From NCBI GenBank assembly GCA_946965045.2, contig OX337238.1, positions 3,100,001-3,164,000 on the forward strand: a stretch of 64,000 nucleotides of DNA, in the 5' to 3' direction. The DNA comes from Epithemia pelagica. Its lineage: Eukaryota > Protista > Bacillariophyta. The stretch's first letter is position 1. Every line of letters begins with the position of its first letter. Below, in pieces: positions 8,124 through 41,100 of this stretch. Under the pieces are notes generated by a model. The model had not been told where the DNA came from. It ran no database searches and saw only the letters and a list, made by a program, of their open reading frames with translations. The position numbers were made by a program, and so were the translations under genes.

Positions 8124-8496
8124 AAGAGCAGCGGCATGTTATAGTAGTGATCAATCCCTCGAGAAGACCCCATAATCCTGTGAAACTTGTAGAAAAGGAT
8201 AACTGGATGAAGCCCATAACCTTTTAGTGACAATTATTGCTTCTCATATTTGAGTAGCCCCGTCAATGCTTGTAGATCGATCCTGACGATGGAACTTATT
8301 GAGGTCTGCTGCTGCCATACGTACGAACGCGATTCACCTTGACCTTTCCAGCTGAACGGCATCATGAGAGTCTGTCAGCATTGACTCGGAACTTTTGTAA
8401 GGTCCGCTCTCGACGATTCTGAAATCGATCTGCTCGGATCTCGATCGTTCAGTATCCCATGGTCACAAGAACGGGTGTCGTGTGTCGTTTTGTACC

Positions 8497-8636
8497 TGTG
8501 CGCCAGCGACAGGACACTCAGGTAGCTACACGTAGTCTAGCTAGATCACACTAGCTATGTCTAGGAGTCTGCCAACAGCAGCCATGGAGCTCAGAGTTTT
8601 TGGAGCAACGCAATCTTTACCAAGTTTGCTGTTGGT
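8497..8636 (+). repeat. Split direct repeat A1 (140 bp)
   Basis: Identical by eye to 18547-18686. Confidence 0.95.
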
Positions 8637-12657: not shown

Positions 12658-12714
12658 CTACCGGCACATCATCGCCCAGGTTCAACTTGCGCCCGTTCGC
12701 CGTGGTCTGATGAA

Positions 12715-15567: not shown

Positions 15568-16589
15568 CCGATAACGAATGCATACACATCCTACACCTTT
15601 ACCTACATCACGTCACAAACGGCGAAAACTACTACAGGAGGTCCGACCTAGCAGCAGATACCATTCAATCTTATGTAACGGCTGCCCATTCCGCACTTCA
15701 GGTTGCCCTCAACCGCCCTGTTAACATCTCCAACCCAACCAACTCAACCCTGCTGCACCCACTGCTATCCGACCCATTACAATTTCATCGTCGCTGGCAA
15801 CGTCCACGCGATCGTAAGGAACCCATCACCGATGCCATCCTTAGCGTGCTCTATTGCCGTGCAGTCGGGGCCCCTCCTTCGTCACTTGACGCAACTCTCT
15901 TCGACTGGGTCCGGCTTGGCCTCTTTACTGGCTCCCGTGCCAGTGAATTTGCCCAAACCTCTGGCTCAAAGTTTGTCTTCGCGGCCGTTCCCAATTGTCC
16001 TAATGATCCATCCTGGAACGATCGACCTATTGCCTTTGTCTCCAGCGACTTCGTCTTCTTAACTCAAGCGAACGACATGCTTCCACTTGCTTCCCTCCCC
16101 AAACACGAACACACCGTCTCGGCAGTCCAGATCCGCTTTCGGCATGACAAAAGCGCTCATAATTTCACGAAACGCATCTTCCGTCGTTCCGGCCACTCTT
16201 ATCTCTGTCCCGTGCTCGCATCCTGTTCAATTGCCCGCCGCTCCCTCTCCCTCCAAATCGGCGCCCACCTGCCCCTCGCCTCCTATCAGGTCAAACCGGG
16301 AAAAATAGCCTACCTTAGGTCGGCCGATATCATCACAGCCCTCCGTCAAGCTTGCCTGGAGGCGTACCCAAACCCTCACAACTACCACCGGCGTCACGCC
16401 CACTTGCTCGTCGCCCATTCTACACGCGTCACAGCCGCTGTAGCGTTGTGGAACGTTCAAATTCCCCTCCCCCAAATTGCCTTCCGACTCCGATGGCAAG
16501 AAGACTCGATCAAACACTACCTCCGTGACTGCTCGAAAGCAATTGGTCCTCATAGTCAAGCGGCCATTGCAGGCGTCCTAAATATTTAA
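15063..16589 (+). CDS. ORF3, tyrosine recombinase (open frame overlaps ORF2; no upstream AUG)
   Basis: Catalytic residues in order: GLFTGSRASE (R), FRHDK (K), HSTR (HxxR), RW (W), HY (Y). Confidence 0.9.
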   Translation: MRRPSHKLLVLAATGFSRYTATPNPCHLHAHRQHVGALVALPCRPCQAARNSSSCSSFSSHAHFCPYSRSITGLAYCRRAQSQCRPVVPPVPCAHLGLRYRAVQASAGPIHRLPRALQVAINDINKLQIHQDRGRTRNKNDRTLDSRGAHFSRWSARNHLTPELLSRLTDNECIHILHLYLHHVTNGENYYRRSDLAADTIQSYVTAAHSALQVALNRPVNISNPTNSTLLHPLLSDPLQFHRRWQRPRDRKEPITDAILSVLYCRAVGAPPSSLDATLFDWVRLGLFTGSRASEFAQTSGSKFVFAAVPNCPNDPSWNDRPIAFVSSDFVFLTQANDMLPLASLPKHEHTVSAVQIRFRHDKSAHNFTKRIFRRSGHSYLCPVLASCSIARRSLSLQIGAHLPLASYQVKPGKIAYLRSADIITALRQACLEAYPNPHNYHRRHAHLLVAHSTRVTAAVALWNVQIPLPQIAFRLRWQEDSIKHYLRDCSKAIGPHSQAAIAGVLNI

Positions 16590-16657
16590 CTACCACTATT
16601 CACATCTAATGTATCTCACTATTCTGTTATGGTATCACTATTTCGTCCGCTCCAACC

Positions 16658-17248
16658 TTAAATCCTCGCTATGTTCTTGTCCGCTCGAGAATAACGCACG
16701 CCATTGTCGGTCTCCACGTGGATACGTGCGTCTGTTACCTTCACCACCCGCCCAGTTGGGTCAGCGGGATCGTTTGGGTTTCGAATCCGAACCCGCTCAC
16801 CAACTTTGAAACGCTCCTCCGATCCACGGCTCGCCCGCCGACCCATAAATCCACCTTGTGTTCGTGGACTCGTACGTCCACGGGGACTCGGTCCACCCAC
16901 CCCTTTGCTTGCCACTCGCCAGACCCATCTTCCTCCACGGGCCGTCGACCCTTCCTCTCGGCCCCGTGGTGTGCCCTCTCGCATTCCTTCTCTGCCCGTA
17001 GGACCCACTCCATCGGGCTCCCACTCCCCCCCTCCTCCTCTGTTGGCCACAGCTGCGTTCGCTGCCGCCACCACATGAATCGCCTGCTCCACTCTCCTCT
17101 CCGCCAATTCCTTCAATTCGAGCAATCGACTAGAGATCTCCACTTGCCTCTCCGCCATCCGTCCCAACTCTCTCATAATCTCGGCCATTTGAGCCTGCCT
17201 ATCCGCCATCTGATCCAGCTCGTCAATCAACTCGGCCATCTCCTCCAT
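16658..17248 (-). CDS. Antisense cargo ORF-B: coiled coil, Arg/Gly-rich linker, C-terminal KOW/SH3-like domain (~196 aa)
   Basis: Heptad-rich N-terminus. C-terminal FKVGERVRIRNP...TGRVVKVT..RIHVETDNG pattern. ATG 2 nt after the ORF-A stop. Confidence 0.65.
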   Translation of the reverse strand: MEEMAELIDELDQMADRQAQMAEIMRELGRMAERQVEISSRLLELKELAERRVEQAIHVVAAANAAVANRGGGGEWEPDGVGPTGREGMREGTPRGREEGSTARGGRWVWRVASKGVGGPSPRGRTSPRTQGGFMGRRASRGSEERFKVGERVRIRNPNDPADPTGRVVKVTDARIHVETDNGVRYSRADKNIARI

Positions 17249-17250
17249 CT

Positions 17251-18255
17251 TCACTCACTGTCTGATTCCGACTTCGACGCGCGTCCCGAAGAATCGCCAG
17301 ACAGGATAACCACTTCCGGTAAATGTTTCTTCCACGTCAACCGCTCGTCCTCTGTTGCCGTGTTCTCCCTCGTCGCCGTATTCTCCCTCGTCGGAGTTTC
17401 CTTAATCGATTTCTCCCTTGTGGGAGTTTCCTTGATCGACCCCAGGCCTTTCTCCTTGGGCGAAACACTCGCGCTCCTCTTCACAGGGGCAATGCTCTTG
17501 CGCTGCTTTTTGGGTAGGGTACTGAAACCCGGTTGGCCCAACCACTCTTCCAACGAACGCTTCTCGCGCTTCGAAAACGCTTCACCAGTTCCTCTCCCTT
17601 CGGACCTCTTTTTACCCGCCTCGGGTTTCTTATCCTTTCGGTCGGATGCTGCAGCAGCCGTCGCGGCTCTCCCTCCGGGAACTGGCACAGGCAATCCACG
17701 GCGGGCAGAGTTCTGCGCGAACAACTCACGAACAACGGCCACTTTTCGTTCCACAACCTCCTCTGCAGAAGGCCTCTCCCGTCCGCCAGCCAAGGCCAAT
17801 CCACAAATCTGGTGGAAAACGACTTCTTGGTCTTCCGGGTGCGGAAACAACAGCTCTAGAGCCACCACGACCTTCTTGTTGCTTGGAGATGCTCTTCGAA
17901 ACACCGTTTCCACGAAGTCTTCCCCGTCCCCTCCTTCCTCCGCAAAAGTCTCACACACACGGGTCACCAGTCGATCGATCTCCGCTTGATGGTCGCCCAC
18001 CAACTCGCGCACGTTTTTCTGCGTCTGAATCACCGACGCCTCTTTGGATGCAAGTATTCCGCCATGCACGTCTTCCAAATGTTGACGCTCCTGGGCGTGC
18101 AACACGCGAGTCTTATCCAGCTCTGTTTGCGCGATATCCACTCCTCCTAAAGCGCAGTGCAATTCTTTGCGTTGTGCCTCGACAACTGTTTTTAAACGAT
18201 CCAGTTGTTCAGCAGTTGTTTCGCTTTCTTCTGTTCTCCGAGCTGCAGAACTCAT
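17251..18255 (-). CDS. Antisense cargo ORF-A: 334-aa coiled-coil protein with NLS-like and SIM-like motifs
   Basis: ATG start, helical E/K/R-rich composition, PKKQRK, repeated KETPTRE, terminal EVVILSGDSS...SESDSE. Confidence 0.65.
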   Translation of the reverse strand: MSSAARRTEESETTAEQLDRLKTVVEAQRKELHCALGGVDIAQTELDKTRVLHAQERQHLEDVHGGILASKEASVIQTQKNVRELVGDHQAEIDRLVTRVCETFAEEGGDGEDFVETVFRRASPSNKKVVVALELLFPHPEDQEVVFHQICGLALAGGRERPSAEEVVERKVAVVRELFAQNSARRGLPVPVPGGRAATAAAASDRKDKKPEAGKKRSEGRGTGEAFSKREKRSLEEWLGQPGFSTLPKKQRKSIAPVKRSASVSPKEKGLGSIKETPTREKSIKETPTRENTATRENTATEDERLTWKKHLPEVVILSGDSSGRASKSESDSE

Positions 18256-19925: not shown

Positions 19926-21089
19926 ATGATTTGGTCCCTGACGTTGCTACTCGGATGGTGTGTCGTGACGCAAGCAAGAACGATGCACGAGAATGCCACC
20001 ATGTCAGGGCTTGTCTTTGCCAACTTGACAGACGATAAAGAGCCGCAATGGAATGATCAAGAAATTCCTCCGCTTCGGGGTGGATGGCGTTACAAACATG
20101 CTTCGGTAGTCGTTGCGAATCCGGAAAATGCAGAGGATCAAACTATTGTGGTCTTTGGGGGACAAACAGATGCTGTATCTCCCACTGATTCCGTCATTTT
20201 GTTAACTTTTGGAAAGCACCACACTACGAAATGGCGAGAGGGACCGAAAATGAACGAAAAGAGGAATGGACATGACGTTGTGGTCTGCAATGGGTGGGTG
20301 TATGCCATTGGAGGGTTTGTCATGGGAGTGGATGAAGGCAAATCCTACTCGGATGCGATTGAAAGAATTCGAGTTGCAGACTTATTGGAATCGTCTTTGG
20401 AAAGCAACCGAAAGAATTGGACGACATTGGATGTTCGATTGTCCTCACAAAGAAATGAATTCACTGCGGCTGTCGTTCGGAATCGGTATATTGTTGTTGC
20501 TGGAGGGTTAGGGGTAGTAAACAATTCTGTTGATTCTTTGTCCACGGTTGAGATTATTGACACGGAATCAAAAGGTGGACCAGTTGTCATTCAAGGACCA
20601 TCTTTGAACGAAGCTCGATATTCACATGGAACCGCGGTGATTGGAAATCGTGTCTACCTTGTCGGTGGGGGCGGGAGAAACGGTGAGTTGGAGTCGGTGG
20701 AATATCTGGAGTTTCGTACAGAAAAGAGCTGTAATGAAGACATTACCTTTTTGTCTTCGTGGACCATGGACAAGAATCTGTCTCTTGTGGAGTCACGTAA
20801 AAGCCACGCTGTGTTGAATTTGGGATTGAATCTGGTTGTGGCAGGAGGATATACGGGATTTTCCTTGCTCAAGTCTGTCAAAGTCTTGGACACGAAAGGC
20901 CGAGTGGTTTGGCACCTACCCAATATGACCATAAAACGGGATGGATGTTCCATGGTGGCAACAGCCAATGGCATTGTTGTAGTTGGTGGATACGGTCATG
21001 ACTCGTGCGAGATACTTCCACTCCTCATCAAAAAGAAAGCACAAAAACTCCACTTCAAGATGAGATATAAACCCTCACTGTTACCGTGA
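19926..21089 (+). CDS. Kelch-repeat protein K2 (copy 2)
   Basis: Protein differs from 3148..4311 at one residue seen (S>L). Confidence 0.75.
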   Translation: MIWSLTLLLGWCVVTQARTMHENATMSGLVFANLTDDKEPQWNDQEIPPLRGGWRYKHASVVVANPENAEDQTIVVFGGQTDAVSPTDSVILLTFGKHHTTKWREGPKMNEKRNGHDVVVCNGWVYAIGGFVMGVDEGKSYSDAIERIRVADLLESSLESNRKNWTTLDVRLSSQRNEFTAAVVRNRYIVVAGGLGVVNNSVDSLSTVEIIDTESKGGPVVIQGPSLNEARYSHGTAVIGNRVYLVGGGGRNGELESVEYLEFRTEKSCNEDITFLSSWTMDKNLSLVESRKSHAVLNLGLNLVVAGGYTGFSLLKSVKVLDTKGRVVWHLPNMTIKRDGCSMVATANGIVVVGGYGHDSCEILPLLIKKKAQKLHFKMRYKPSLLP

Positions 21090-21363
21090 ACAACATGGAT
21101 GTGATTCAAGCCAGGATCCTATTGTTTGACGAATCCATGAATTGGGATGCCGGTGTACTGGCTATCACGGTAACGGACAACCGGCTTGATCTCGCAGCGT
21201 ACGATCAACTGTCTGCAGTTTGGACTGGATTTCTACCTAACGATTTGCCACACTCAAAGAGCAAATTGTTTTCATAACCCGACGGAACCATCTTGCCTAA
21301 AATCGGATTACTATATCGTATCCCAATTACATCAAGTCGCTACGTTGTCTCATAATCGTCTCT

Positions 21364-23129
21364 TCAAACAAAACACCAAAATGAAAAGCAACGATTCAAG
21401 TACTTCTGGTTCGTGGCAATTTTGGATTGAAGAATCTCCACTTTTCGGAGAAGGGGAATTTTTTCTCGCATGCCTTCAATCGTCTGCAGGATGGACTGGA
21501 TCTCGTCAAGGTCGGCTTGAAGGTCTTTCACAGAGCGGAATTTGTCATCGCTCAAAAGAGATTCCGTTGCAACATGAAACAGAACAATCCATGTACTCCT
21601 GGTTCGTGGCAATCCTTGATTTAAGAAACTTGACTTTTCGCACAAGGGGGAGTTTTTCTCGCATGAGTTCGATCGTTTCGATTTTGGTCTGGATCTCGTC
21701 AATTTCGTCTTGTAGGTCCTTCACTGAGCGAAACTTGGCGTCACTCACGATGGATCTAAGAACGACAAGCAAATCTTGTGCATCGGCGCCCTTTTGCACC
21801 ATTTCTTGGTCGCTGTATTCCTTTCCAGCCTTTTTCACAATTGATTCGAAGTATTCTATTTCTTTTTCGAGCTCCGCCCGACAGGAAAACTTGTTCTGTA
21901 AAGGGACCAGGTGGAAGTAAGATATGATGTGAGAATTTCTAAAAAAAACTGTATTAGCAGAAGGAGAGTTCTGCAGCGTACCTTTAGTTCTTGTTTCTTT
22001 GTCATGAGTGGAAGTGTCTCACAAGAGTCTACCTCGTATCCACCAATTACAACAATGCCGGATGACGTTACAACCATGCTGCATCCTTTCCGTTCCTTCT
22101 TCATATTCGAAAGGCTCCAAGTGACACTGTCTTCGGTGTCCAAGACTTCTACCGACTTCAACAAGCCCGATGTGCTCTGCCCTCCTGCCACCACGACACT
22201 TGACCCCAAACGCAAAGCAGCGTGTTCGGCACGTGACTCAAGAAGAGCAAGATTCTGGTCCACAGTCCAAGAGGACGAGAAGGTCACGTCGCTGCTGCTG
22301 TTCATCTCAATTAAACTCTAAATATTCCAACGAGTCCAAGGTGTATGAATATCTAGAGCCTCCAACAACGTAAACACGATTCCCAATCACAGTCATTGCA
22401 CGGCCATTGCGAGCATTGTTCAGAGATGGCCCCGAAGTCACAACAGGTCTGCCCTTTGCCGCAGTGTCAAGTATATTAACATAATAGCCATTAATAACAA
22501 TGTACCGATTCCGAACGACAGCCGCAGCAATTTCTTCTCCTGATAGGGACAATCGAGCATCAAGTGTCGTCCAGTGCTTTCGTTTACTTTCCATTGACAT
22601 GTCCAATAAATCTGCAACTCGAATATATTCAATTATTCAACCGTGAGTTACCATCATACCCTCCGATGACATAGACCCAACCATTGCAGACCTCAACGGC
22701 ATGACCCCTTCTCTGTTGCTTCATTTTTGGTCCCTCGCGCCATCCTTTCGGGCTCTTTCCAACATTCAACAAGATAACGGAATTAGTAGGATCCTCATGT
22801 TCTGTGCGTCCTCCGAAAACCGCAATGGTTTGTTCCTCTTCATTATCTGGATTCTCAAGGACTACCGAAGCATGTCGGTAACGCCATCCTCCTAGAAGCG
22901 GGGGTATGTCTTGATCATTCCATTGAGGGAAGTTGGTGAATACAAAGCCCGACAAGGTTGCATCGTCCTTCATGGTAGTTTCTCGCGCCACGAAAAGCCA
23001 TCCGAGCAGCAGTGCAACGGACCGAGCCACGAAAAGCCATCCGAACAGCAATGCCATGGACCGCCACCATTGTAGGGGAACCACTTGGTTTGGCGAAAAG
23101 GATGGATCAGTATGCTTGTTCAGAGACAT
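21364..23129 (-). pseudogene. Kelch-repeat pseudogene K3 (copy 2) with intact leader
   Basis: ATG 23129 (MSLNKHTDP...WWRSMALLFGWLFVARSVALLLGWLFVAR). Shares both frameshifts with copy 1 but lacks its deletion and extra stop. Confidence 0.85.
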
Positions 23130-23562
23130 TGTAGATAGACTGGTAGCAGTCTCAACCGAGATCCTCCAGGCGTTATGAGATTGCTCCAACGAATGAGCTA
23201 AACTTTCCGGTAAAAGCTGTCCAGGATACGTTTTTCGCGATCCACAGATCAAGACGCTGGCCCTGTACAATCTAAGACTTTCAAGTGAAAAGCCTTCTCA
23301 ATGCGCGACGAATGTTCCTCGCCACGTGTAACCTTTTGCTCTGTACCAATCCACTTAGCAAAAGTTGATCAACAACCCGAAGAACATGCGCTCCAAAGCT
23401 GTTGAAAATGAGAGTGACTATCGTTCCCGTAGAGTGGTTAGATTGAGAAACCGACAAGTCGAATCTGGAGTTGACATGGGGTGGTGTTTGCTGACCGTGT
23501 TACTGGGATGATCCAATGTGCTGGTAGGCAAGTGCCGTGGAAGAAGAACCAGCCCTTCTGAA

Positions 23563-25216
23563 ATGGTCTTTCTTTCAAGTGAATCTGAAACTCCAGAATG
23601 GAAGTCGTTTAAACTACCACAAGCTGTTAAAGGAGTGTTGCGTGGTGATCATACTACCGTTGTCCTCCCGCATGGTGAAAAGGGAAAAGAGCCAACTGTC
23701 GTTGTCTTGGAGGGATACCAAGAATATGGAGTTATGATGAGTTTACAAGTCCCTTGGATATTGAAGAGAACAGATGATTTGACTAGGAAGGCATCATCCG
23801 TTTTCCTTCTGAATCCACAAGTCGGCAGCTCCACTTCACGAAAGGGACCCGACCTCAATGGTGGGAAATCATGGAATCTTCAATGGGGCCATACAGCTAT
23901 GGTCTGTAAGGGGAGTTTATACGTCATTGGAGGATATCGAGCGTCCTTGGAGTTTGAAACCCTCCAACGTATTGGTGTTGCTGATTTGCTTGAAACAACA
24001 TCAGTCAACATGAAATGGTCGACGGTCTTGATTTATCGATATTGGTTTCCAAGATATGGCGGATGTGCGGCGACCGTTGTCCATGATCGTAATATTTTGG
24101 TTGTTGGAGGACATACGGGGCTCTTTACATTGAGCTCTGTTGACATTATTGATACCGCCGCACCGAACGGACCTTTACGGATTTCGGGCCCATCCATGCA
24201 CGAAGCTCGGACGGGATGTGGCATTGCTGTGACTGGCCGACGAATCTACGTGGTTGGTGGTCACAATGGATACAATGTGTTGAACTCGGTGGAGTATCTC
24301 GAATTCAATGACGTGTCTCACGATGATACAAGTGACAACGTATCTTCTGTCTTTCCGTCGTCGTTGTCATGGAAAATGCACGAGACTCTGGCTCTCAATG
24401 TTCCGCGTCGAAATCATGCCATTGCGACAGTGGGATCCAATATTGTCGTCGCAGGAGGGTTTGACGGCAGCAGTAGTCTCAGGTCTGTTGAAGTTTTGGA
24501 CACTCAACGAAACATAGTTTGGAACCTTCCATCAATGAGAAAAGAACGAGTTGGTTGCAGTATGGTTGCCCTCTCTACAGGACTTGTGGTGACTGGAGGA
24601 GCGGGGGATGATTCCGCTGAGACACTTCCATTGAGTGAAACACGAGAAACACTCCTGGTAAGAATCTCTTTGAACTGCATGTATCTGTTGTTCCTTGTAT
24701 GGTACTTCGTTACCTCATGTCAAGTTCAAACGCTCCGGTTGGTCCTTTCTGTAGAAGATGCTGTCTTGTCGTGCCGAGCTTGAGATGGAAATCGAAAAGC
24801 TTCACATGGCAATCTACCGTGTCACGATGGAGTTTCACGATGAAGACGTTCTGGAACAAGGCATCAAGGCACAGAGACTACTACCAATTTTTGAATCTCT
24901 TGCAGAGGAAGACCAGTTCCGATCCATTGAATTCATGCAAGAAGAAATTGAAGAGCTTTCGAAAGAATTGGCAACCGTGCAAGTCATTCAAGAGAGACTT
25001 CCTCTTGTTCGTAAAATCAAAATGCTTCAGACCAGAATCGCCATGAACCATGCTTTCATGGAAGAGCAAGAAATGGACAACTCAGCTAGGAGAGCTATAA
25101 CCGCCAGTGATGACTTGACCTTGTCGTCTGAGCCGCGATCAACTTTTGAGGATACATGTGCATTTCATGCGTTTCAGGATGATCATGGCCACGACAGTGA
25201 GCTTGCGTTTTCGTAG
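23563..25216 (+). CDS. Kelch-repeat + coiled-coil protein K4 (copy 2; exons 23563-24657, 24755-25216)
   Basis: Intron 24658-24754. Exon 1 is near-identical to copy 1; exon 2 is diverged. Confidence 0.8.
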
Positions 25217-26012
25217 AAGAGCAGTGGCATGTTTTAGTAGTGATCAATGTCTCGAGAAGACGCCATAATCCTGTGAAACTTGTAGAAAAGGATAACTGGA
25301 TGAAACCCACTACCTTTAGTGACAATTATTGCTTCTCATCTTTGAATAGCGACGTCAATGCTTGTACATAGATCCTGACGATGGAACTTACTGAGGTCTG
25401 CTGCTGCCATACGTGCGAACGCGATCCACCTTGACCTTTCCAGCTGAGCGGCAATCATGAGAGTCTGTCAGCATTGACTCGGAACTTTTGTAAGGTCCGC
25501 TCTCGACGATTCTGAAATCGATCTTCTTCTGATATCGATCTTTCCGTCCGTGTATCATTGTCGCAGTCACACTCACACGGTGTCGTTCTGTACCGTACGA
25601 CGAGCAGACGAAAGATACCGAATGACTGAAACCGTAACGGGACTAAAAGCTAGGTCAACCTTGTAGGCCTAGACGAGTACCTAGCGTACTTCTTGGTCTT
25701 GAATGGACTATATCTGTTGCAACAATCCGCCGAGCGCCTAGGATTCGAACCGATAACAATCAGTCACATCCCGTTGGTCATGTTGACACGATAAAATGCT
25801 CCTATGAGCATCTGAATTGGTTTTTTCTATTCCAACAAAGACTTACTGCGAAAGGCCTCTCTCAAAAATTCTTATATACTTGAATCATGATTAAAAACAT
25901 GCATTACTTGACTATCGTTGCTTCGATGAAATTGTCTTTCAGTCCTTGGACTCCTTCTTCTCTGATACACACGAACATCTAGTTTGGGCATCAGCCATTC
26001 CCATACCACATT

Positions 26013-29000
26013 CTACGACTCTTCGGTTTCTTGTTTCTCTGCTCGTTTCGTTGCAAGTTCCTCATCGTACTTTTGTCTGGCCATCAAAGAGCACAGTGTG
26101 TTGCGGGCCTCCAACAACCGCCGAAAGATATAGGCCGAATCCTCTTGGCTTCGTTTGTCTGGGTGAAAAATCTTGGAGAGTTCGCTAAATTTGATGCGAA
26201 TAGTTTTGGACGATGCATCCGGTGCAACACCCAATACCTCATAGTGCGTGGCGTCTTCGCGGTAAAAGACTGCCACATCATCTTCTGGATGTGTCTGGTG
26301 TTCCAGTAGAAACTGGTTTGTCTTTGTTCGCGCTTCCTGGTCTCGAGCGAAGTGATCCCTGAGGCGACGTTCTCGCTCCTCTAGATACTTTTGCTTGATG
26401 CCATTGCTGTCAAAGGCTGTTTTCGCTGGCATCATACCGTTCATTTCTTCCAAGTAGGCAAATATTTCTGACCGACTGGTCGAGCCATTTGACAATGCTT
26501 CTCGAAATGCGATTGTGCGGTAGTGATCTCGTTCAGCCCGTTCAACAGTTTTTCGATCAGTTTGCAGTTTTCGTCCATACATTTCCTCGCGTCGCTTGTT
26601 CAGGAACGAATAGAGCTTTCTGGTTCTGCGCATTTCGTCAATTTTATCAGCTGTCACATTGAGTTCTTTCTGAAGAAGCTTTACATTTAGCACCATGCTG
26701 TTGTAGGAAGTTGTTGTGAGAGCCTGGAAAACCCTATTGAAGATCAAGTGAAACCTGAAACGTACCTCAAACTCCCATCAGCTCCCTGACGTGCACATCG
26801 ACCCTTGATTTGGACTTCTTCGGACAAATCAGTTGAGAAAAAAGCCTGAATGACGTGGGCCCCACCTGCGTCAAGCATCCCCGTGTCGTAGTTTTTGAAA
26901 TCGGTGCCACGGCCGTACTCACGAATCATCAAAGTAATGGCACCCCTTTGCGTCGCTTGTATGAATGCAGATGATTTTTCAGTTGGGGAAGTTGCTTCAG
27001 TGATTACTTGCGTGATTTTTCGCAAAGGATCCATTACCGAAGACTCGTAAAAGCGTAGAAGCACTTCACTGGAGTCGAAGAAGATCAAGATGCTTCGTTT
27101 GATGCTTCTGTCGCCATTCACGGGTATCTGCCGCCTGTCAATTTCGTTCTTGATCTCCAAGAAATGGTCATCCTCTGTATCGCAAAGACACACGTCTAGT
27201 AAAGACACAAGATTCCGTTAGTTCGGTCAAGGAGTACAGACAACTCCAAGAAAATGGCGATGGCGTACCCTGTTCTAAATCCCCCGCAAATTTGAGCTTG
27301 TTGGTGCCATACACCGATGGGATATAAGAGTACTTCTCAATCCTATAATCGGTTTCGAGCACACTTTTCGCTTCAATCTTTAGGTCTTTCAGAGTCCCAG
27401 TAACACCGAGAATGACATCATAGAGGAAAGGAACTTCGGCGTAGGAGACATTTCCAAAGTTAAAACTCCACGACATGAACCTCCCAGCCAGTTCAGAAGA
27501 GATGTTTCCAAGCTCCGCTTCCTTCATGTAAGCAAACGCTGTTCTGTACCCATAGCAATACCTTGTCGTTGTCCCGTCAAAATACTTGTATGCGATTCTA
27601 CCATCCTCGGTGATACTATAGGAACTGTCATGTTTCCCTTGTCGAACATAGATTGCATCGTCAATCATATGGAGTAACGTCTCTTTTGTGAGCTTGTGCG
27701 CATCAGGGGCTATGGTTTCCAAGAACCGACAAACTTCCGTTGATGACAAAAGAGTGTATCTGTCGTGCTCCTGACACTGTTTCCAAATGAATCTGAAAAG
27801 ATTCTTCATTTTCTCCTCTCCCCTGTCATCGCTAATATACGCGGCGGTAAGAAACGTTTCGCCATACACATCAGGCGACAACACCACATCAACTTCATCC
27901 AGTAGCAGAACTTTTAAACGACTTGACCCTTCATTTACCGATGCTGTTTTTCTTTGCTGTGGTTCTCCACGTGTGACATCTGATCGCTGTATGAAACCTC
28001 TCAATAATTGTCTGGTCCGGTCGTTACCGTCGACAGCAAATCCAAGATCCATCAGCGTTGAGTAGGAGACCAACTCGTGAACTCCAAAAGCTTCAAACAT
28101 GTATTTGAATGCAGTTAAATCTCGGTCGCTGAGAAATTGGCTGTAACAAGCACACACGACTTCACAATTAAACAGCGCAAGAATAATTGATGTCACACCG
28201 AGAACGATCGATTTTCCTTCACCTGTCTTGATCTCAACTAAGTGACCACGTAGCTTTTGAAAGTCATTGAAAGTCGAATTCAGCATGAGGAGGATTGCCA
28301 CGACTTGCGCAGGGTGTGGCTTTACAAGATAGTCTGAACTGTTGTCAATAGGAACTGAGAAAGCATCACTTTTGCTCAGAGACCAGTACGCAAAGATGTA
28401 GGCGGCCATTTTACACAGTTGCGCTTCATACCCAATGGAAAAATCGACAGCTGTGCTCCGAGTTGCTCTCACAATGTCGTCTAAACAGCCATGCTTTCTT
28501 CCTTTGTTCTTCAGAATAGGAATTGATTCCAATACTATCTCTTCGTAGCTTCGGTTGAACAAGTCATATGAGTGCTTTAGACTTGACGCTTTGCCCTCTG
28601 TCATCCTGAGCATTTGGATGACGTAGTCGATTGTCTGTTTCGCAGTTGCACTGTTGAATATAGCGTTCTGTCCCCCTTCAAAACATTTGTGTTCCAGAAG
28701 CAATTGGCGAGCAAATGTAGCGTCGTTACCCTCCACTGAATTTATCTCAAAGTAGAGATCGAGCAAAAATTTGCCTCGATCATCAGAGGCTTGAGATGCT
28801 TTCAAAATCATATTGTCAATGAAAGCGTCGATCGGCTGACGCCAGCGTGGAATCTGACGGCCTGCCTTTTTGAGGTCAATGCACAGACGGGAAGTCGAAC
28901 ACGCGTGGGGCTCAATCTGTTGACAGATATTCTCGAGGCTAGACTCGAAACTTCGCGATGCATCATCCAGAAGATCATTGGCAAGAGAAGCGACCGAGCT

Positions 29001-32000
29001 GTCCACGGAAGAGAAAGCAGTTTTAATAGACTGGAGATTCAAAAGACAGGACTGAATTTTGGAAAATTCCACATTATACTTGGGAAATGAATCCAGCATC
29101 TTCTCAAGACGCTTTGCGACTTTCTCAGTTTCACAATGAGCTTGACTGACAGCATCTGTGTCCAAGGAGCGAAGTTCTTTCTGATCAATGTGATCTTTGA
29201 GCATTGTTGCTTGTTTGGCAGCTTGAACTATTTCAGCGATATTCTTGCAAACCATGACAATCGAATGCTCAACCACGTCGACTGCTGATATACAAAGAGA
29301 GATTGTCTGAATTTTCCGATGAAGCTTGATAATCAATGATTTTGTTTTCGATAAGATGTCTTCATAATGCGGATATGCTGCGGCTTTTGCCTTTAGTTCT
29401 TTTGCATAGTGACCGCGTGGTAGAGGTTGTACGGCGAACGCATCAATTGCTTCCAGGGATGGCGAGTTGAGCCAAAGGTCGAGCAAAAGCGCCAGGTCTT
29501 GAATATCCATGTGTGCTATCAGCTGATCTGGAAGTTTCGAAACTCTTTCGATTGCGTTAGCAAACCTTGCACATGCCTCTTTCAAAATCCGACTTGAATC
29601 GTGCCGTTGTTCAATGATACGTTTAGCTAGGCACGGTACGTCGACCTCGACTCTCAGGAAACCCAGCAAGAGAACCAGCTCGTTAGAAAGAGTCTTCGAA
29701 AGTGACGTTGCCATTTCGAAGGAGCTTTTCCGTCCATCAAATTCACGAGATATTCGAAAAGCACACTGTAATATACACTGATTAAGCTTGCTCGTGAGAC
29801 TTTCCAAGAGCTCAGCGAGCTCGTCGCATCCGCGGTTCTGGTTCCACGTTAAAAACCTCGCAACTCGTTCTATGAAATTGATTTTCTGTCCTTCTTTCAA
29901 GACTCTCTGCCAGGACATCCAATTTTCCGCTCTCGCGACATCTTTCAGAATTGCCGAGCAGTGATTCATACCTCCTCTTTTTAGTTTCATCACATAGTTA
30001 CGGCATGTTTCTGTCGCTTTTTGTAGTTCACTAGCAAACCGTTTGGCCTGGTCGCGGAAAGACTTGGACAAATATCTGGCAGAAGCTTGAATATTGTACA
30101 TTTGTTTCCTCTCTTCATTTAAATCATCTTTAAACATTGGTGACCATTTGGACAAGATTTCGTATACTCTTTCAATATGAGAAAAACGCTCAATAAGACC
30201 CGACAGGTGTTCATCAGCCTTGTTCAAATCACTGTTGGCATGTTCTTGTATGTTTGAGAGTTGCTTTTTCCCCTCACGTGTGGCTCGAAAGAGCTTTTGA
30301 ACGAGTGCATTCTCGAACTCAACCACAAGTTTAAGGACTTCGTCCATTGCTTCAATATTCTGGAAGACCAATGAATGTGGTTGTTCACATACAGCAAGCA
30401 GAAGCATGCGATGCTCTTCCAATTCTTTGAGAAGTACATTTGAGGGCAAAGAGTTGAAATTCCGTTCTCTGGAATTTTCAAGGAGGACTGCCTTGGACGT
30501 ATTGATTCGTTCCACGACCGCATCAACTAATAGTTGGTACTGCGTCGCCAAACAAGTCCCCTGAATGGTATCATGTTCCTGACTTGCTAGTTGTGAATTC
30601 ACCTCAAACACAGAAGAGGACAAATCTCCAACGAAAGAAAGACAATTGAAGAAAAGTGTGACGTTCGGAGGACTACTTGCAAAGCAGGCACGTGCTGTTT
30701 TCACAATTGTTCCGGTCACGGATGAAAGCCGGGATAGGATTTCAAGACCAATGCAAATGGTGCCTTCGGATCCGTAACAACCCTCCATTCTCTGCAATAC
30801 ATCTTTCATTCGAATCAATGTTTCTTTGATAACTGTCTTCTTTGACAAAGTAATGTCCACCATGTATCTGCTTGGATTAATTTCCAGATTCAGAATCTCT
30901 TTTCCGATGCGGCGGAACATCGTTTTAACGGAGTCACTACACATAGCTGTAGAATCCACGGTAGTCTTTTCCGCCAGATGCTGCATTGCTTCAAGAGTCT
31001 TCAGATCTGCTTGAACGACATTGACTTTTTCTGTTAAAGATGTAGCGTCACCGTCACATGAATCAATTTGTGCCACGTGACGATTTAACTTGTCAATGCA
31101 ATAAAGAATGTCCTGACGAATAATATCCTGGGCTTCTTTTGATGCCTTTTCACCTTCTTGGAGAACAGATGCAAGATCTTTTAGAACCTGCATTCGGCTC
31201 ATGACAGCCATGTAATTTTGAGAAGCCAATTCTCCCTTGAGAAGTTTTAGGTTCAACGTGAGTTGATTCTGGAGTTGACCGAGCACCACTTTTGGAAAGG
31301 GGGGCGAGAAGAAACTCCGTGGGTCATCAATCACACAATCACTAGCAACAATATGAGACAGAATGCTTGAAGGTGACGACTCATATCCTTGGTTTGAAGA
31401 AAGAGACAACATGAGAGCCGTTGGTGTCGTTTTCTCGACCATATCCGCCAAGAGAGGCCGGAGCCAACTGTCGGACGAGTCCAGGTCTTGAAGTACCTTG
31501 TTTAACTTTTTGCAAATACGTTTCTCGTCTCGAGGATCCATGCTCTTGGTAAACAGATAGTGAAAGGCTCCAAAGTCTTTGCAGTTGCCACCTCCCGTCA
31601 TTCGAATAATTGTACTCATGGTATCCTTAAACGCTTGAAATCGATCTCCCAACGTATCGCAGCTCAGGACTACGACTGGCCGTACCGACTTGGCACCCTG
31701 CAGTGCGCGGCAGAGACCCATGGCATTGACAATTTCCATGACTGGTCCAGCCGAGTCTCCAAATCCAGGTGAATCGGCGACAAGAATGCTCTTGCCGGAT
31801 TCAAGTTGGACTGGAAAGGACTGAATGGCTCTCGTAACGGACGTACTCCCACAAGCAGTTCGAAAGGCCTTGAGTTCTTCCGCCGGAAACCTGGAAGGTT
31901 CGTAATGATCTGAACCATCGACTTCTTGTTCGGTAAACTCGACACCCGCGAGGTATAGCAGGGTCGATGTTTTACCACTTCCAGAACTTCCAATCAATAA

Positions 32001-32708
32001 AAGACTATCGTGGTCTTGAATGCTAGAGGCTTGTATCTGGCTTTGTTTCAATAGCTTGTAAAGCTCGCAAAGATCCAATGGGAATGCTTCTTTCACCAAA
32101 TTTGAAATGGCATCGAGAATCTCTTGAGCCAACAATGGATTGGGAGCTTGAACAAAGGTGCCAAGGGTTTTGAGGATACGAGATAGGCCTTGAAAGTGGC
32201 TTTGGAATGTTTCTAATGCAGGGATGCAGCGTTTCAACCATCCGCGGTAATCATCCGCATTCATCGTCTTCGAATCGGACTTGGTTGGATCGGAGACATA
32301 CGCATCAAGGACGGAACAAATGTCGTCGAGAATGTCTTCCACAAACAAGGAAGAGTCCTTTTCTATCTCTGTGCTGGAATCGACTGTACCTCCATTGACC
32401 TTCTTGATGGCTTCCTCTTCGATTGATCCGTTCGCCCCACTGCTGGCAGGAGGATCTTGGCTATTATGGAGCTCATCTTTCGGTTTGTTCTTGCTGGAGG
32501 CCTCTTCTTCTTCATGGACAATATGCTCATCGTGTTGCACATTCTTGTCATCTCCTTCATCGTTATCATCGTGTTGGTTTCTTGGAGAATCTGTGAAGGC
32601 ATCCTCCATGGGATGGTCCACGACCATGTTCTTGTGGTCCTTGTCGTTGTTGTCCGCCAGTTCCACCTCCATGGCATCTTCCGTATCTTGTTTCTTCTCG
32701 TCTCCCAT
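26013..32708 (-). CDS. 2184-aa multidomain protein: P-loop GTPase-like domain + helical region + SecA-like SF2 ATPase + C-terminal DnaJ domain (exons 32708-27269, 27195-26766, 26697-26013)
   Basis: GSSGSGKT and DSPG GTPase motifs. SecA-like EIKTGEGKS, YSQFLSDRD, DEVD, GVTGTL, YGRGTDF, QIKGRCARQG. J-domain HYEVLGV...FHPDK. Two GT-AG introns (73 and 68 bp) join the three ORFs in frame (6555 nt). The second acceptor site is inferred. Confidence 0.85.
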
Positions 32709-35187: not shown

Positions 35188-38100
35188 ATGTCGTCGTCGG
35201 GCCGGAATCCACCCACGACCAATGGTGGCAATGGCAATGGCAATACTGGCAAGGGTGGCGGTGGTGCCTGGCAGCGACGACGAGGTGCACCCTGGACAAG
35301 CACCACGACGACCAGTACAACGACCACCACAACGACTCCATCCATGGATCCACCCACAACAACAACCGGCACTGCTGGTACTTCTACTACGACAACGACA
35401 ACGACACCCACCAAAGCCACATCGTCGTGGGTCACGACAGGTGCCACACCCTCCACACAAGTCACCACCACACCCTCTCCCACTGCCAAGCAGCAGGAAC
35501 AGGAGGACTTGGCGGCGGTTCCACAGCAACCAAAGCCAACCACCACCACCACCACGACAACAACATCGTCCTGGGTGCCCTTTTTTGCGACCACACAGCC
35601 CAATGAATCGATTCAGTGGGACGATCAAGTGCCCTTGACCTTGTTTCCCCATTCCCAGTCGCACGCGCGGCCACCACCGAGCTTGGATTCGGCCTTGTAT
35701 ACGACGCCCGTCAAGTTGCGTCCATCACAGTCGGCGCAATTGTTGAACAATTCCGCCTTGCAGCCCAATTCGGTATTGCTCTTGTCGCCCACGTGGACCG
35801 TGACCTCGCCGAGTCAAGAAAAATGGAAAGGTCAAACGTGCTTGACGCGCACGTCCATTGCGCACACGACGGCCGCCGCCGCGGTGGGATTTCGTCGTGG
35901 TGGCAGTGGTGGTGGTCCCATTGATCTCGATTCCCACCACCACCACTTGCTGGGTCCCCTGGATTTGGACGAAGAGGAAGAAGGGGTGGTTCCAACCAAA
36001 AAGAACCAAAACAAGAAGCAGAAAAATACCGGACCCATTGATCTGGATGCCCCCTTGCCGCAGGATGACGACGACAATGAGGATGACGACGACAATGAAG
36101 GAGCTGCCGCCCTCCAAGTCCTTTCGGAAGACGACGACGAAGAAGAAGAAGAAGAAGACAACGCTCCAGAAGAAGCACAAGAACAAGAAGCATTCCCTCC
36201 AGAAGACCAAGCCGCCGATGAATGGGTGGCTAGCTTTGCTTTTGTTCCCACGTCGTCCTCCTTTTCCATGGATGATCTCGTGGCCGCGGCGACTGGCAAT
36301 ACCGGTGCGGGTGCCTCTCCGGCTGTCTTGGCAGCCACAACCCCCCAGTGGATGCGTCCTTCGCACATGGGCAATTCCCAAACCAAACCGGGCGGCGACC
36401 CCCTCTTGTCCCATGCCGAACTCACGCAACTGCTGTGGTTTCCTCCGCCGTCGTCCAACAATCGCAACAATCACAACAAGGATGCCGACCCCCAAAATAC
36501 GACCGCACTCACCAGTACGCCCTGTCGTCGATTGGCCTTGTCGACGGCCCTGTCGTCGTCGTGGGTGTCGGAAGGTCCCCCACCGGCCATGGTGGAGCAA
36601 GACGACGACGAACAAGTGGTGGTTCCCATTCGTACCAACCAGCAGAACAAGCACCAAAAGAAGAAAAAGCAGAATACTGGACCCATTGATCTTGATGCCC
36701 CCTTGCCGCAGGAAGATGATGACGATGATAGCGAGGCAGGAGCTGCCGCCCTCCAAGTCCTTTCTGAAGACGACGACGAAGAAGAAGACAAAGCTCCAGA
36801 AGAAGCACAAGAACAAGAAGCATTCCCTCCAGAAGACCAAGCCACCGATGAATGGGTCGCTAGCTTTGCCTTTGTTCCCACTTCGTCCTCCTTTTCCTTG
36901 GACGATTTGGTGGCCTCGGCGACCGCCAATACTGGTGCGGGTGCCTCTCCGGCTGTCTTGGCGGCAACCACACCCCAGTGGCTGCGTCCTTCGCACACGG
37001 CCAATTCCCAAACCAAACCGGGCGGCGACCCCCTCTTGTCCCATGCCGAACTCACGCAACTGCTGTGGTTTCCTCCGCCGTCCAACAATCGCAACAATCA
37101 CAACAAGGATGCCGACCCCCAAAATACGACCGCACTCACCAGTACCCCCTGTCGTCGCTTGGCCTTGTCCACGGCCCTGTCATCGTCGTGGGTGTCGGAA
37201 GGTCCCCCACCGGCTCACCTGGTGCAAGACGAAGCGGAGGCTGTAGACCAGAAACAAGACCCGACAGAACACCAAGAAGACTCGGACACGCAGCCACCCC
37301 AGAAGAATGCCGTAGTACCCGACTCGAACCCTTCTCGTAAACAAACGACCACCCCTGCGGCTGCAGCGGACCCGGAACCGAAGCAAAACGACCACCAACA
37401 GAAACCGCCCAAACCCACCGCCAACAACCACAAAAAGACGGGATGGTTCATGGCACCGACGCAATCCATTGTCTGGCGGCGACTCTTGCGGCCGCGTCGC
37501 TTGGGACGGCGAGGCAGCAATGGTGCGGCGCAACCAAAGAATGATGCTGAGGATGACAACAACAACAACAACAACAACACTACCAGGGACGCACAGGACA
37601 AGACCAAAAAGATCAAACACCCCAAAAAGCACAAGAACGCACAACAACAAGTACACGATACCACCGAACCATCGATACAACAGACGGATGAATTTTCCGT
37701 CGAACCCACAGCCTGGTTGGTGGGCACACCGGCCACGGCCACCTTGTCGTCGACGGCATCGTCGAGTCCCAATGACAGTCCAGGCAGTACCGAGGGTACC
37801 GTGCTTCAAGTCATGCCCCTCTCTCTGTCCTCGTCGCTCTTGCAAAGGACCAATACCCAAGACGATGAAACCTTTGGCGATCATCCGTCGGGCATGATGA
37901 TGACACCAATGGTCGCAGGCTCGTGGACACGGGCGGGATCGGGCATTCCCTTTGCCTGGTCGCACGACGAGGAAGAAGTCCCCGCTCCCCTCGCCCCTGG
38001 CACGGTTCTGGCCGTGCCCGAAACTCCATCCTTGGGTATTGGCATGGCTCCCAGTTGGGATCACCCATTCATGGTCGATAACGAGGATGCCAATGCCACG

Positions 38101-41100
38101 GGAGACCACCACCACCAAAACAACCCGAGTTTTCATGCCCTCTTGACCGTGACACCCCTCTCATCGGCCGTTGCAACGACACACGGCAGCAGCAATGATG
38201 GCACAACCAATGAGGAGGAGCATGGTGCGGCCAACCCCGAGGATTCCCTGTCCCTGTCCTTTCTCGTGGTGGAATCCATTGTGCATTCCCTCGATGACGA
38301 CCAGGACCAACATCTCAACCTTGAAGAGCTGCACAACACGGCACCACCATCAAACGACGACAAGTACACTCCTCAACTCTTGACGGCTCCTCAACCGCAA
38401 TCCGAAGAACCATCTCTGTTGCAAGACGAAGACAACGAAGAGGAGGGACAGGAGGAGGAAACCATTGAGGATCCGACTCAAGCTATTCCAAACAAGACGA
38501 CATTGTCGATGCCACTCCAAGACCCCAAGAAAGAGCCCTCCATGAACCCAGACACGAACCACAACCGAAAACAGAGACCCCAATTTCAATTGGCACGACT
38601 GTTGGGACGACGTCACAGTCTGGGTCGTCGCAATTCCGTGTCCAACAAAACGCCGACGGTGGAACCACAAGAACCGCAACAGGGACGACGTCTCAGTCTG
38701 GGTCGTCGCAATTCAGTGACCAAGATGACTGTGGAACCACCAGAAGAGCAACAGGAACAACCACCACGAAAGCAGTCAGAGCCACACGACATTGACCTCC
38801 ATGTAGCATCTCAAGCCTTTTCCAAACAAGGCACTCTTTTGCACGAACCAAACAAGCGGACCGAGTCTCGTGAATCCCCCACCAAACGAGACGAGTCGGA
38901 ACCAGTGGTGAACGCCTCCTGGACCGATTTTGGTGCCGCAGACTTTGGCACCTCGAACGTCTGGCCCAGTCCTCCATCCCACGATGATGCTTTTATCGAC
39001 CCGGCGAAAGAGCAATGGACCACTCATCCGTCCTCCTTCTTCCCATCGGACCTGAACGAAGCAGTGCCAATGGTTTTCCCGTCGACCAATGCCACAACAC
39101 CCACCCTCATTGAAGAAGCGGAGCTCAAGCAGAGTGCACCATCGGAACCATTTGCCGCGAAGCAAACGACCACGCAGAATGAATCGACGACAAAGTTCAT
39201 GGCGTCGGTCGAAACACCAGTCCCCAAATCATCCGTATCGAAAAAGCAGGATCGACGAAGCCTGTTTGAACAGGCCTACTCCCCTCAGATTGAACCCATG
39301 CACCAACTCAGTGCAAGTGTGACGTCCCCTGTCCCGTCGCCCATGATGATGGAAACTCCCGAATCGTCCATGAATGACGACGATGAGGACGATGATGCCT
39401 TTACGCCAATCCCTGGCTATAAGGATCCCGAATCACCGGAATCCAACACCAAAACGAGTAAAACCTCGCCGCATGTCATCAAGTCGTACTCCCAGCGTGT
39501 ATTGGGAATGTTTGGCCGATCACTCTTTTACACGGACGAAAAGAAACCCAATCAAAACAAGAATGGGACACTCGTCACGAATGGAACGAATCTTGTACCC
39601 ACTGCAACTCCGGATCCCGTAATTCACACGAGCTCCGGCGAAGAGACGGTCCAGGATGTCATGCAGGAAAAGGCCGTAGTATCACCAAGTGTAGAAACGG
39701 CAATGTCCATGTCACCCGTCCAGTTAGTTCACGATGTCCCAGACGAATCATTTAATCGAGAACAAGATGAGACTGAATCGTTTGAAAACTCAGAGGATGA
39801 TATCCTTGTGGTATTGGACAAGTCACCCCCTATTGAGAAATGGCTGAAGAATGGCGACGAACAAACCAAGTCCGAATCTCAAGAGAAGCTTCCAGTGGAA
39901 GATGTACTGACTTCAAATAATGCACCAGAAGGTGGAAAAGGACTTGAGTCAGTGACAAAAAGCCCCGAAGATACCAAGAAGACTGTAGAGAAGGTCAACC
40001 AAGATGAGAAATCTAAAGAACCCGCTCGAAACTCTTCACCGAATACGCACGCTGATGCACGCCCCGCTTCCAAGCCCGCAACACAGAGTCAACCGACAAT
40101 CGTCAAGACTGAAAAGAACATTCAAACGTCTCCATGGCTGTCATCTACTCAGGGGAAAGCCATTGCGCCCATGGCCGAGGAGTTTGCAACGAGATGGCCC
40201 GACCTGGTGACTTCGTTTTCCTCTCCCGACTTTGGTACTCCAGCTCAAGCAGACTATCATCAAGGGATTGAGTCGGAGGACTTGCAACTAAGCGCGATCT
40301 TTCACGACGAAGCGGATTCAAAGATCTTCAATCATGTGCATATTTCTAGTGAGCAATCGTTTACGGTCCAAGACGTTATCGAAGTTATCAACAAATCGTC
40401 GGTTGTAGAAGAAACACCCGCAAAACAAGGTCTCGACGAAGGCATATTCAATGATAAAAACATCAGAGAAGACCTCCCATGCTTGGAGATAGAAGACAAG
40501 GATATACCTGTCTTCAACGATCACCTTGATGAGAAGGAAGGCATGAAGGACAAAGAAAAGAAAAGTCAAACTCTTTCCACGGATGAGAGACTTGAACGTA
40601 GTTTGAAAGATGTAAAAGACGAGTGCACAAACAAGGAGAACGATGCAAAAGTTCACGACATCAAACAAGAAAAACAGAACACCGAGATCAACAGAGACAG
40701 CTGTCATGTGACAAGCAAAGCACCTGTGCGCCCTGCCTCCCAGATTGACAAAAAGGCTAAACGAACAAGTATTTCTCCATTGAAAATGATTAGACGACCG
40801 CGCGAAACACCTAAGCGAAACTCTGAGAGTCCACAAAAGCGATGGCGACGTCGAAAGGATTCCACAAGAATAGCGCAAACGAACGAAGCCAAAGTTTTTA
40901 TGTCTGCAAAAACTCTTGACTCCACAGATAGTCATCGAGTGTCGAAGCAAAGCAGCAACATGTTCAAGACCAATGAAACCGCAAAGTCCACTAACCTGAT
41001 TGGATCTGATCAATTACAATCTGAAGACCATCCTTTCTTCACAAAGTCGGACGAGGTATTGGCGTCGACCGCGAGACCTGCTGAAAGTTCATCTTGGGCT

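Follow-up and report, generated by a model that had tools for sequence, protein, structure and literature searches.

SecA is known for driving proteins across the SecY channel in bacteria and plastids, its motor and clamp holding and moving the unfolded polypeptide, and red-lineage plastid genomes, including those of diatoms, encode a secA of their own. J domains trigger Hsp70 to lock onto its client, while the G domains of the GIMAP, Toc34 and septin type pair via their nucleotide-binding faces. ATPase modules are linked to an output domain in other giant proteins too, among them sacsin, in which the output is a J domain, and midasin/Rea1, in which it is a MIDAS/vWA domain; their resemblance to the protein described here is a functional analogy only, as their motors are Hsp90-like or AAA+ and not SecA-like, with no homology outside J or vWA. 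The stretch of DNA analysed here, hereafter the window, comprises 64,000 nucleotides of the diatom Epithemia pelagica (GenBank assembly GCA_946965045.2, contig OX337238.1, positions 3,100,001 to 3,164,000 of the forward strand). It carries, on the minus strand between 26013 and 32708 (all coordinates are window positions), a gene for a giant protein in which a GIMAP/Toc34-like domain, a long helical arm, a SecA-like motor module and a J domain follow one another. This is a J-terminated, diatom-wide variant of an uncharacterised family of giant GTPase/SecA-like motor proteins, and the variant is what is new here.

Searches of the full-text literature returned no description of the family and no study of the diatom J-terminated proteins, only passing mentions. 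Among the domains listed for Amoebophilus effectors are SecA-like, helicase-related ones and a GTPase of the GIMAP type (Zhang et al. 2012, PMC3482391), Legionella fallonii lfa2470, labelled SecA DEAD-like, has been listed among eukaryote-like proteins (Gomez-Valero et al. 2014, PMC4256840), and bacterial secondary SecA_DEAD proteins have been tied to type I secretion, which is a different context (Kamneva et al. 2015, PMC4452313).

An earlier interpretation made from the letters and open reading frames (ORFs) alone, the sequence-only reading, had joined three minus-strand ORFs (27168-32708, 26744-27208 and 26013-26747) by in-frame splicing into one protein of 2184 residues. When contigs of four public runs (X1-X4) were aligned to window 25700-29700, a 932-nt contig of run X1 was found to consist of the blocks 27269-27437, 26766-27195 and 26365-26697, leaving out the 73 nt of 27196-27268 and the 68 nt of 26698-26765 and nothing else. 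On the plus strand each gap begins with CT and ends with AC, which corresponds to GT..AG on the gene strand, and the spliced coding sequence gives 2,184 amino acids and a stop, the same length as had been proposed. Contigs of runs X2-X4 continue through both introns and show no joints. Exon 1 (27269..32708; residues 1-1813 plus one base), with its donor after 27269 set by the spliced contig, encodes the acidic N-terminus, the GTPase, the helical arm and the first nucleotide-binding domain (NBD1) with its insert; intron 1 (27196..27268) contains a CTAAC branch-like site; exon 2 (26766..27195; residues 1814-1957) encodes NBD2; and exon 3 (26013..26697; residues 1958-2184 and the stop), which follows intron 2 (26698..26765), encodes scaffold-like helices, a linker and the J domain. 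Another acceptor of intron 1, at 27174, with a 94-nt intron and a product of 2,177 residues, was rejected since the spliced X1 contig uses 27195.

Run X1 fits a transcriptome, as evident from its total of 39 M letters, its longest contig of 19.6 kb and its intron-skipping joints. Its contigs tile 25855-29635, and its depth is zero over 25700-25833. Judged from where these transcript-like contigs stop, the transcript probably ends about 158 nt past the stop codon, which gives a probable 3′ untranslated region at 25855..26012, covered by an X1 contig of 25855-26285, although the end of an RNA is not provable from contigs. The gene is thus an intact, spliced one, a single unit from exon 1 to the J exon, and the X1 contigs are transcript-like. 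Prokaryote-style gene callers list three separate ORFs at this locus and at all its paralogous loci, which would suit a gene-model artefact with the J exon belonging to a separate gene. That explanation is essentially refuted by the single contig spanning exons 1, 2 and 3 with both introns precisely removed, by frames that join without a stop in four paralogues, and by the annotated or transcript-derived diatom proteins P0012, P0014 and P0023, which hold both domains in one chain. At 28280 and 28319, contigs of all four runs match on one side and then continue with 175-255 letters of unlike sequence; these probably represent a paralogous copy that is more than 95% identical only locally.

The SecA-like module spans residues ~1362-2036. 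The first part of NBD1 (residues 1363-1610; 27879..28622), supported by Pfam SecA_DEAD, hhalign and VIA-align, carries the Walker A motif TGEGKS at residue 1495 (28209-28226) followed by DEVD at 1604. An insert of 150 residues at the position of the SecA PPXD (residues 1611-1760; 27429..27878), located by the hhalign alignment through PPXD and by the alignment to SecA-N68, contains YSITEDG at 1697. The second part of NBD1 (residues 1761-1813; 27269..27428), assigned by motif and hhalign, holds motif III, GVTGT, at 1768, while motif V, GRGTD, and motif VI, GRCARQG, lie in NBD2 at 1908 and 1945. Pfam SecA_DEAD matches residues 1464-1544 with 31.6 bits against a cut-off of 24.6, and exon 2 matches the NBD2 of SecA2/SecA in NCBIfam with an E-value of 1.5e-7. 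A search of PDB with the single NBD1 sequence reached SecA at E ~0.7 only, so that profile and structure comparisons were needed; a look-up of P0014 in the ESM Atlas gave only SecA_DEAD clusters, below 0.9. With hhalign, the family profile aligned continuously to residues 98-592 of Escherichia coli SecA (from NC_000913.3) with a probability of 98.8 and E 7e-17. Motif search, hhalign and Pfam therefore agree with the sequence-only reading that both SecA-type lobes are present with all key motifs, and the motor is clearly SecA-derived.

The structural model of the motor was that of the Thalassiosira exigua protein P0012 (residues 1262-2106), with which the window protein shares 37% identity over its own residues 1193-2171; the model was built from a 50-row alignment including three window pieces and had a pLDDT of 88.9. 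The top 36 Foldseek matches of this model were all SecA or SecA2 (E 1e-16 to 3e-9), with RecQ and DEAD-box helicases coming next, from E 4e-6. VIA-align gave a Z of 26.3 with ~550 residues aligned to full-length SecA, 24.1 over 388 residues when the E. coli DEAD motor was taken by itself (3bxz), and 16-17 with ~335 residues for DEAD-box proteins. The alignment to SecA-N68, which consists of motor and PPXD, covered 464 residues, 76 more than that to the PPXD-less motor. The residues aligned beyond the bare motor suggest that PPXD and scaffold partly have counterparts in the giant protein. Within PPXD, hhalign pairs the family pattern h-Y-x-V-x-x-D-x-I-G-Y-K with SecA DYIVKDGEVIIVD, so that YSITEDG of the insert corresponds to SecA YIVKDGEV; the profile alignment there is weak, and Pfam SecA_PP_bind was not detected.

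The module is followed by the J domain (residues 2107-2168; 26064..26249), which covers the full 63-position DnaJ profile of Pfam (49.2 bits against a cut-off of 27.8, E 5.8e-13). The HPD motif is intact at residues 2135-2137 (26157-26165), as had been read from the sequence, and the model of the homologue P0012 shows its J domain with high confidence. Past the J domain the window protein has 16 more residues, and no vWA domain was found in it by Pfam. In the model, NBD2 is followed by a 41-residue helix, two shorter helices, ~30 disordered residues and then the J domain; the 41-residue and the two short helices align to the SecA scaffold, so that the beginning of the scaffold is kept in the predicted structure. 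SecA_SW was not detected by Pfam and the model contains no wing domain, for which no room is left, as the disordered linker and the J domain follow the scaffold-like helices. The proposal that the J domain stands where SecA has its scaffold and wing is therefore too simple, since a long scaffold-like helix is kept, as is a PPXD-like insert.

The giant protein shares with SecA and SecA2, its best structural matches by a wide margin, the two-lobe DEAD motor with SecA-type motifs I, Ia, II, III, V and VI, the insert at the PPXD position with its Y-I/x-V-x-D-G hairpin motif, and the long scaffold-like helix after NBD2. It differs in being ~15% identical to them, in lacking the wing domain and the SecB/zinc tail, and in having the module embedded at residues ~1362-2036 of a 2,184-residue eukaryotic protein that has no targeting signal, with a GTPase before the motor and a J domain after it. 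The TIGR00963 SecA equivalog model gives 14.4 bits against a cut-off of 800, and the giant protein is not a SecA orthologue. This score, the lack of any signal or membrane segment and the occurrence of relatives in non-photosynthetic organisms bear out the view that it is not the plastid translocase.

A helical bundle and a G domain (residues 171-470; 31299..32198) lie near the N-terminus, with the G1 P-loop GSSGSGKT at residue 240 (31968-31991) and DSPG at residue 312. An AlphaFold2 (AF2) model of residues 170-560, built from a 33-sequence family alignment, had a pLDDT of 89.4. Its best Foldseek matches were GIMAP7 (E 5e-8), GIMAP2 (TMt 0.58) and Toc34 (TMt 0.55), followed by GBP1, atlastin and RNF112; the GTPase-like P-loop domain that had been noticed thus folds, in the model, like GIMAP/Toc34. 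The family profile of the domain, compared to the sequences of PDB, matched mainly at the P-loop (midasin, ABC, SRP54), GIMAP4 alone being matched beyond it, and Pfam AIG1 stayed below threshold (17.6 bits against 27), with a weak match in 16 of the 33 family members. G1, the switch-I Thr and the DxxG motif are nearly invariant across the family, but the Asp of G4 after the conserved FTK is not fixed, which makes GTP specificity of the domain no more than likely. The likeness to GIMAP/AIG1 and Toc34 GTPases accordingly lies in the fold, the G1 and G3 motifs and the switch-I Thr; unlike in GIMAP/AIG1 GTPases, the AIG1 match is sub-threshold, the Asp of G4 is not fixed and the domain is embedded in a giant multidomain chain.

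The region before the G domain (residues 1-170; 32199..32708) is poorly conserved (13-87% identity among paralogues), hydrophilic and acidic, with 46 Asp and Glu as compared to 17 Lys and Arg. A hydrophobicity scan of the whole 2,184-residue protein found no signal peptide, transit peptide or membrane segment, the sole strongly hydrophobic 19-mer being the buried core strand after the motor Walker A; an acidic N-terminus devoid of a signal or plastid-targeting peptide had indeed been described. The helical arm (residues 471-1362; 28623..31298) is the most divergent part and has no Pfam match. The helical middle of ~1000 residues that had been proposed is in keeping with a proline plus glycine content of 4.3% and with the helical state of both ends in two models, its interior being gauged indirectly.

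A word search with the motor region revealed 211 giant relatives. Their eukaryotic sources include diatoms (Thalassiosira exigua, Mayamaea, Seminavis and Amphora), Hexamita inflata with its many 'helicase-related protein' paralogues, bdelloid and monogonont rotifers, Tetrahymena, Heterostelium, Reticulomyxa, Arcella and Pelomyxa, and one gammaproteobacterial metagenome-assembled genome (MAG) is also represented. In a BLASTP comparison of the spliced protein with 123 retrieved relatives, ~60 share the N-terminal GTPase as well as the motor. Going by these alignments, the window protein belongs to a large uncharacterised family with chains above 1,800 residues that combine a GIMAP-like NTPase, a helical arm and a SecA-like module. 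Most non-diatom members have ~250 more residues after the motor, in which a weak Pfam vWA match was obtained for six of ten tested; one protein (P0007) has a clear C-terminal vWA match. Family members mostly end in vWA, and the diatom clade has replaced vWA with J. The vWA-type relatives, exemplified by the Heterostelium album 'helicase', the Hexamita inflata 'helicase-related protein' and L. fallonii lfa2470, are homologous in the GIMAP-like NTPase, arm, pre-motor region and SecA-like module, with 25-35% identity to the window protein over the GTPase and ~30-35% over the motor. They differ in their C-terminal vWA of ~250 residues, whereas the window protein and the diatom clade end in J without vWA. 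The rotifer and Tetrahymena relatives are named 'SecA family profile domain-containing protein'.

The same order of GTPase, arm, motor and C-terminal J was found in the Seminavis robusta 'protein DnaJ' (P0023, 2,162 residues), Thalassiosira exigua ACHAWF_018746 (P0012, 2,106 residues) and Mayamaea pseudoterrestris MPSEU_000923500 (P0014), which are only 32-37% identical overall to the window protein and carry automatic annotation only. On this comparison other genomes share the architecture. In bacteria, 34 loci turned up in a scan of species-representative genomes, nearly all from Legionellales and other Gammaproteobacteria or from Chlamydiae (Parachlamydiaceae and Simkaniaceae). The three examined (L010:247-8961, L019:247-7809 and L006:67-9012), from Gammaproteobacteria, Chlamydiae and Legionellales MAGs, are uninterrupted ORFs of 2,520-2,981 residues with a GTPase-like P-loop and SecA_DEAD. 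Two of these three lie on contigs of 2.05 and 2.9 Mb and are for that reason truly bacterial.

A quick IQ-TREE analysis of 100 motor rows, with E. coli SecA as the root, placed the window protein, its three paralogues and all the named diatom proteins in one clade with a support of 100*, every full-length member of which ends in J. Two further members of the family carry the J domain elsewhere: in P0044 it lies at 2391-2448, just before the motor, and the GTPase is kept, while in P0007 it lies at 506-557, ~360 residues before the motor, and the protein falls inside a 99* clade of J-less members. No starred branch parts P0044 from the diatom clade except that clade's own, and by parsimony the motor tree requires three changes of J state. 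J has thus joined the motor at three different positions, and these positions, the starred branches and the parsimony count together make it probable that it did so more than once.

Further copies were found in the same ENA assembly, with exon 1 identities of 86% (L003), 77% (L001) and 53% (L002), and the family has at least seven copies there. Splice donors and acceptors are kept in the four paralogues, including the donor G|GTACG, while the intron sequences drift, and the same junctions lead to open frames of 2,184 (L003), 2,182 (L001) and 2,083 (L002) residues, each with a J domain at its end. Many relatives called from genomic contigs end 1-45 residues from the position of intron 1, and this clustering suggests that intron 1 is old. 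Identity among the paralogues ranges from 41-81% in the helical arm to 81-96% in exon 2. The pairwise ratio of nonsynonymous to synonymous substitution (dN/dS) among the four copies is 0.32-0.34 overall and below 1 in every region, with 0.14-0.22 in the second part of NBD1 and NBD2 and 0.40-0.47 in the helical arm; the arm and the PPXD-position insert evolve fastest. The J exon has a ratio of 0.09-0.18 when the pair includes L001, but 0.57 when the other copy is the near-identical L003. Low ratios and open frames indicate that the J exon is constrained coding sequence. The substitution pattern places the four copies under purifying selection, and all of them look functional.

As compared to L003, the window copy shows a mosaic synonymous divergence (dS): values of 0.25-0.38 in the arm, pre-motor region and PPXD-like insert stand beside 0.07-0.09 in the GTPase, NBD2, linker and J. 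Such a mosaic resembles the outcome of gene conversion among the paralogues or of a recombinant past. Three shorter relatives in the same assembly (P0009, P0010 on a contig of 2,007,300 nt, and P0011 on the contig of L002), of 1,137-1,308 residues as called, match the window protein only from residue ~880-903 on, with 44-47% identity in the motor and the GTPase part absent as called; either the genes may have been called too short, or these proteins may form a subfamily devoid of the GTPase.

A kelch-repeat gene cluster (19926-25216) lies directly downstream of the giant gene, with genes at 19926-21089 (+), 22629-23270 (-) and 23518-24783 (+). Kelch genes also flank the paralogous loci L002, on both sides, and L003; this adjacency could be co-duplication or functional pairing. 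On the plus strand, 35188-43617 holds an uninterrupted ORF of 2,809 residues with no Pfam family, the start of which is Thr/Ser-rich, acidic and of low complexity, the motif '...KKQ(K)NTGPI...' recurring in it; the region has a high GC content and a strong AT skew, and no tandem DNA repeats were found in it. A minus-strand ORF of 789 residues at 45667-48036 likewise has no Pfam family, and 8000-18000 forms a GC-rich block (0.55-0.56) with a strongly negative GC skew.

What such a protein does may be considered from the established behaviour of its parts, from which a remodelling model follows, by analogy, as the most economical one. The sequence-only reading had suggested an unfoldase or disassembly machine; the idea is reasonable, and the occurrence of J at two further positions in the family makes it more plausible. 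In this model the protein would be a GTP-gated, ATP-driven cytosolic device for polypeptide remodelling or disassembly that delivers its client to Hsp70, an interpretation put forward tentatively, as one that falls somewhat short of being probable. Nucleotide-dependent pairing of the GIMAP-like domain would switch or assemble the machine, the client would be chosen by the divergent arm and the PPXD-like clamp, the SecA-like motor would use ATP to grip an unfolded polypeptide segment and move along it, and the J domain would then trigger Hsp70 to seize the client. For relatives of the vWA type, docking on the client would be the task of the MIDAS site, as in midasin. The recurrent joining of J to the motor at different positions suggests that the clients are proteins, handled together with Hsp70.

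Several points weigh against this interpretation. The G4 motif is not conserved, FTK being kept without a fixed Asp (FTKSMD in the window protein), so that the 'GTPase' could be an 'ATPase'; the motor was modelled on the 37%-identical homologue P0012 and not on the window protein itself; and the PPXD likeness consists of a weak profile alignment and extra aligned residues, with SecA_PP_bind undetected. Run X1 carries no label as RNA, and its contigs were placed on 25700-29700 only, the 5' two-thirds of the transcript lying outside that range. The SecA fold is moreover close to that of DEAD-box RNA helicases, so that the substrate might also be a nucleic acid. A helicase or translocase in which a superfamily 2 motor acts on RNA or DNA, with J and GTPase as regulators, would agree with DEAD-box and RecQ proteins as next-best structural matches (Z 15-17; E 4e-6), with weak Helicase_C matches and with the database name 'helicase' of some relatives. 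It is nevertheless improbable, as the SecA matches are far stronger and ~200 residues longer, the motifs are SecA-type (TGEGKS, YLSxRD, GVTGT, GRGTDF and GRxARQG), the SecA-specific PPXD-position insert and scaffold helix are kept, and repeated J fusion points to protein clients. More improbable still is a membrane protein-import motor, with a Toc34-like GTPase, a SecA-like pusher and J at an organellar or periplastid channel of the complex plastid. In its favour, Toc34 is among the structural matches of the G domain, SecA works as a motor of translocation, and import is driven by J proteins together with Hsp70; against this stand the absence of any signal peptide, transit peptide or membrane segment, the core architecture in rotifers, Hexamita, ciliates and bacteria, all without plastids, the absence of a wing domain after the scaffold-like helices in the model and the failure of the SecA equivalog model.

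A further explanation concerns the biological role, which may possibly be housekeeping or conflict with viruses or bacteria, and is compatible with the remodelling mechanism. The protein would be an immune or conflict sensor-effector, and in bacteria a host-manipulating effector, whose arm recognises invader proteins and whose motor, vWA or J output neutralises them or signals. The family occurs in patches and has expanded in single lineages (Hexamita, rotifers and Tetrahymena have many paralogues, besides the copies in this assembly), and Legionellales and Chlamydiae, bacteria that live within protists, carry full-architecture copies on long contigs. The listing of lfa2470 as eukaryote-like (PMC4256840), the Amoebophilus effectors with GIMAP-type GTPase and SecA-like domains (PMC3482391), the GIMAP/GBP-like fold of the GTPase and the fast evolution of arm and insert point in the same direction. 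On the other hand, dN/dS is below 1 in every region, with no positive selection at this resolution, no death, nuclease or other effector domain is present, and the kelch neighbours may be coincidental co-duplication. A defensive role, which the sequence-only reading had raised, is no more than possible, and the full sensor-effector scheme is rather unlikely.

The remodelling model might extend, more doubtfully than for the diatom protein itself, to the family as a whole. The SecA fold would have been recruited outside membrane translocation into a cytosolic, GTP-gated, polypeptide-threading unfoldase with a J-type output to Hsp70 or a vWA-type MIDAS docking, a class of machine unrelated to the AAA+ unfoldases. 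Protists, rotifers and the bacteria living inside their cells would have this class in common, and conflict between host and microbe may be one of its uses.

The finding sets a SecA-derived motor with a clamp-position insert in a giant eukaryotic protein that is soluble, with a GIMAP-like switch on one side of the motor and an Hsp70 recruiter on the other. In the J fusions, a family of hundreds of unstudied giants has its first concrete clue to function, one that favours protein clients over nucleic acids. The diatom subfamily, being intact, spliced and under purifying selection, makes a convenient starting point for biochemical and genetic work. Should the remodelling model prove true, it would add a non-AAA+ type of unfoldase, and it may explain the presence of the same architecture in Legionella- and Chlamydia-like bacteria.

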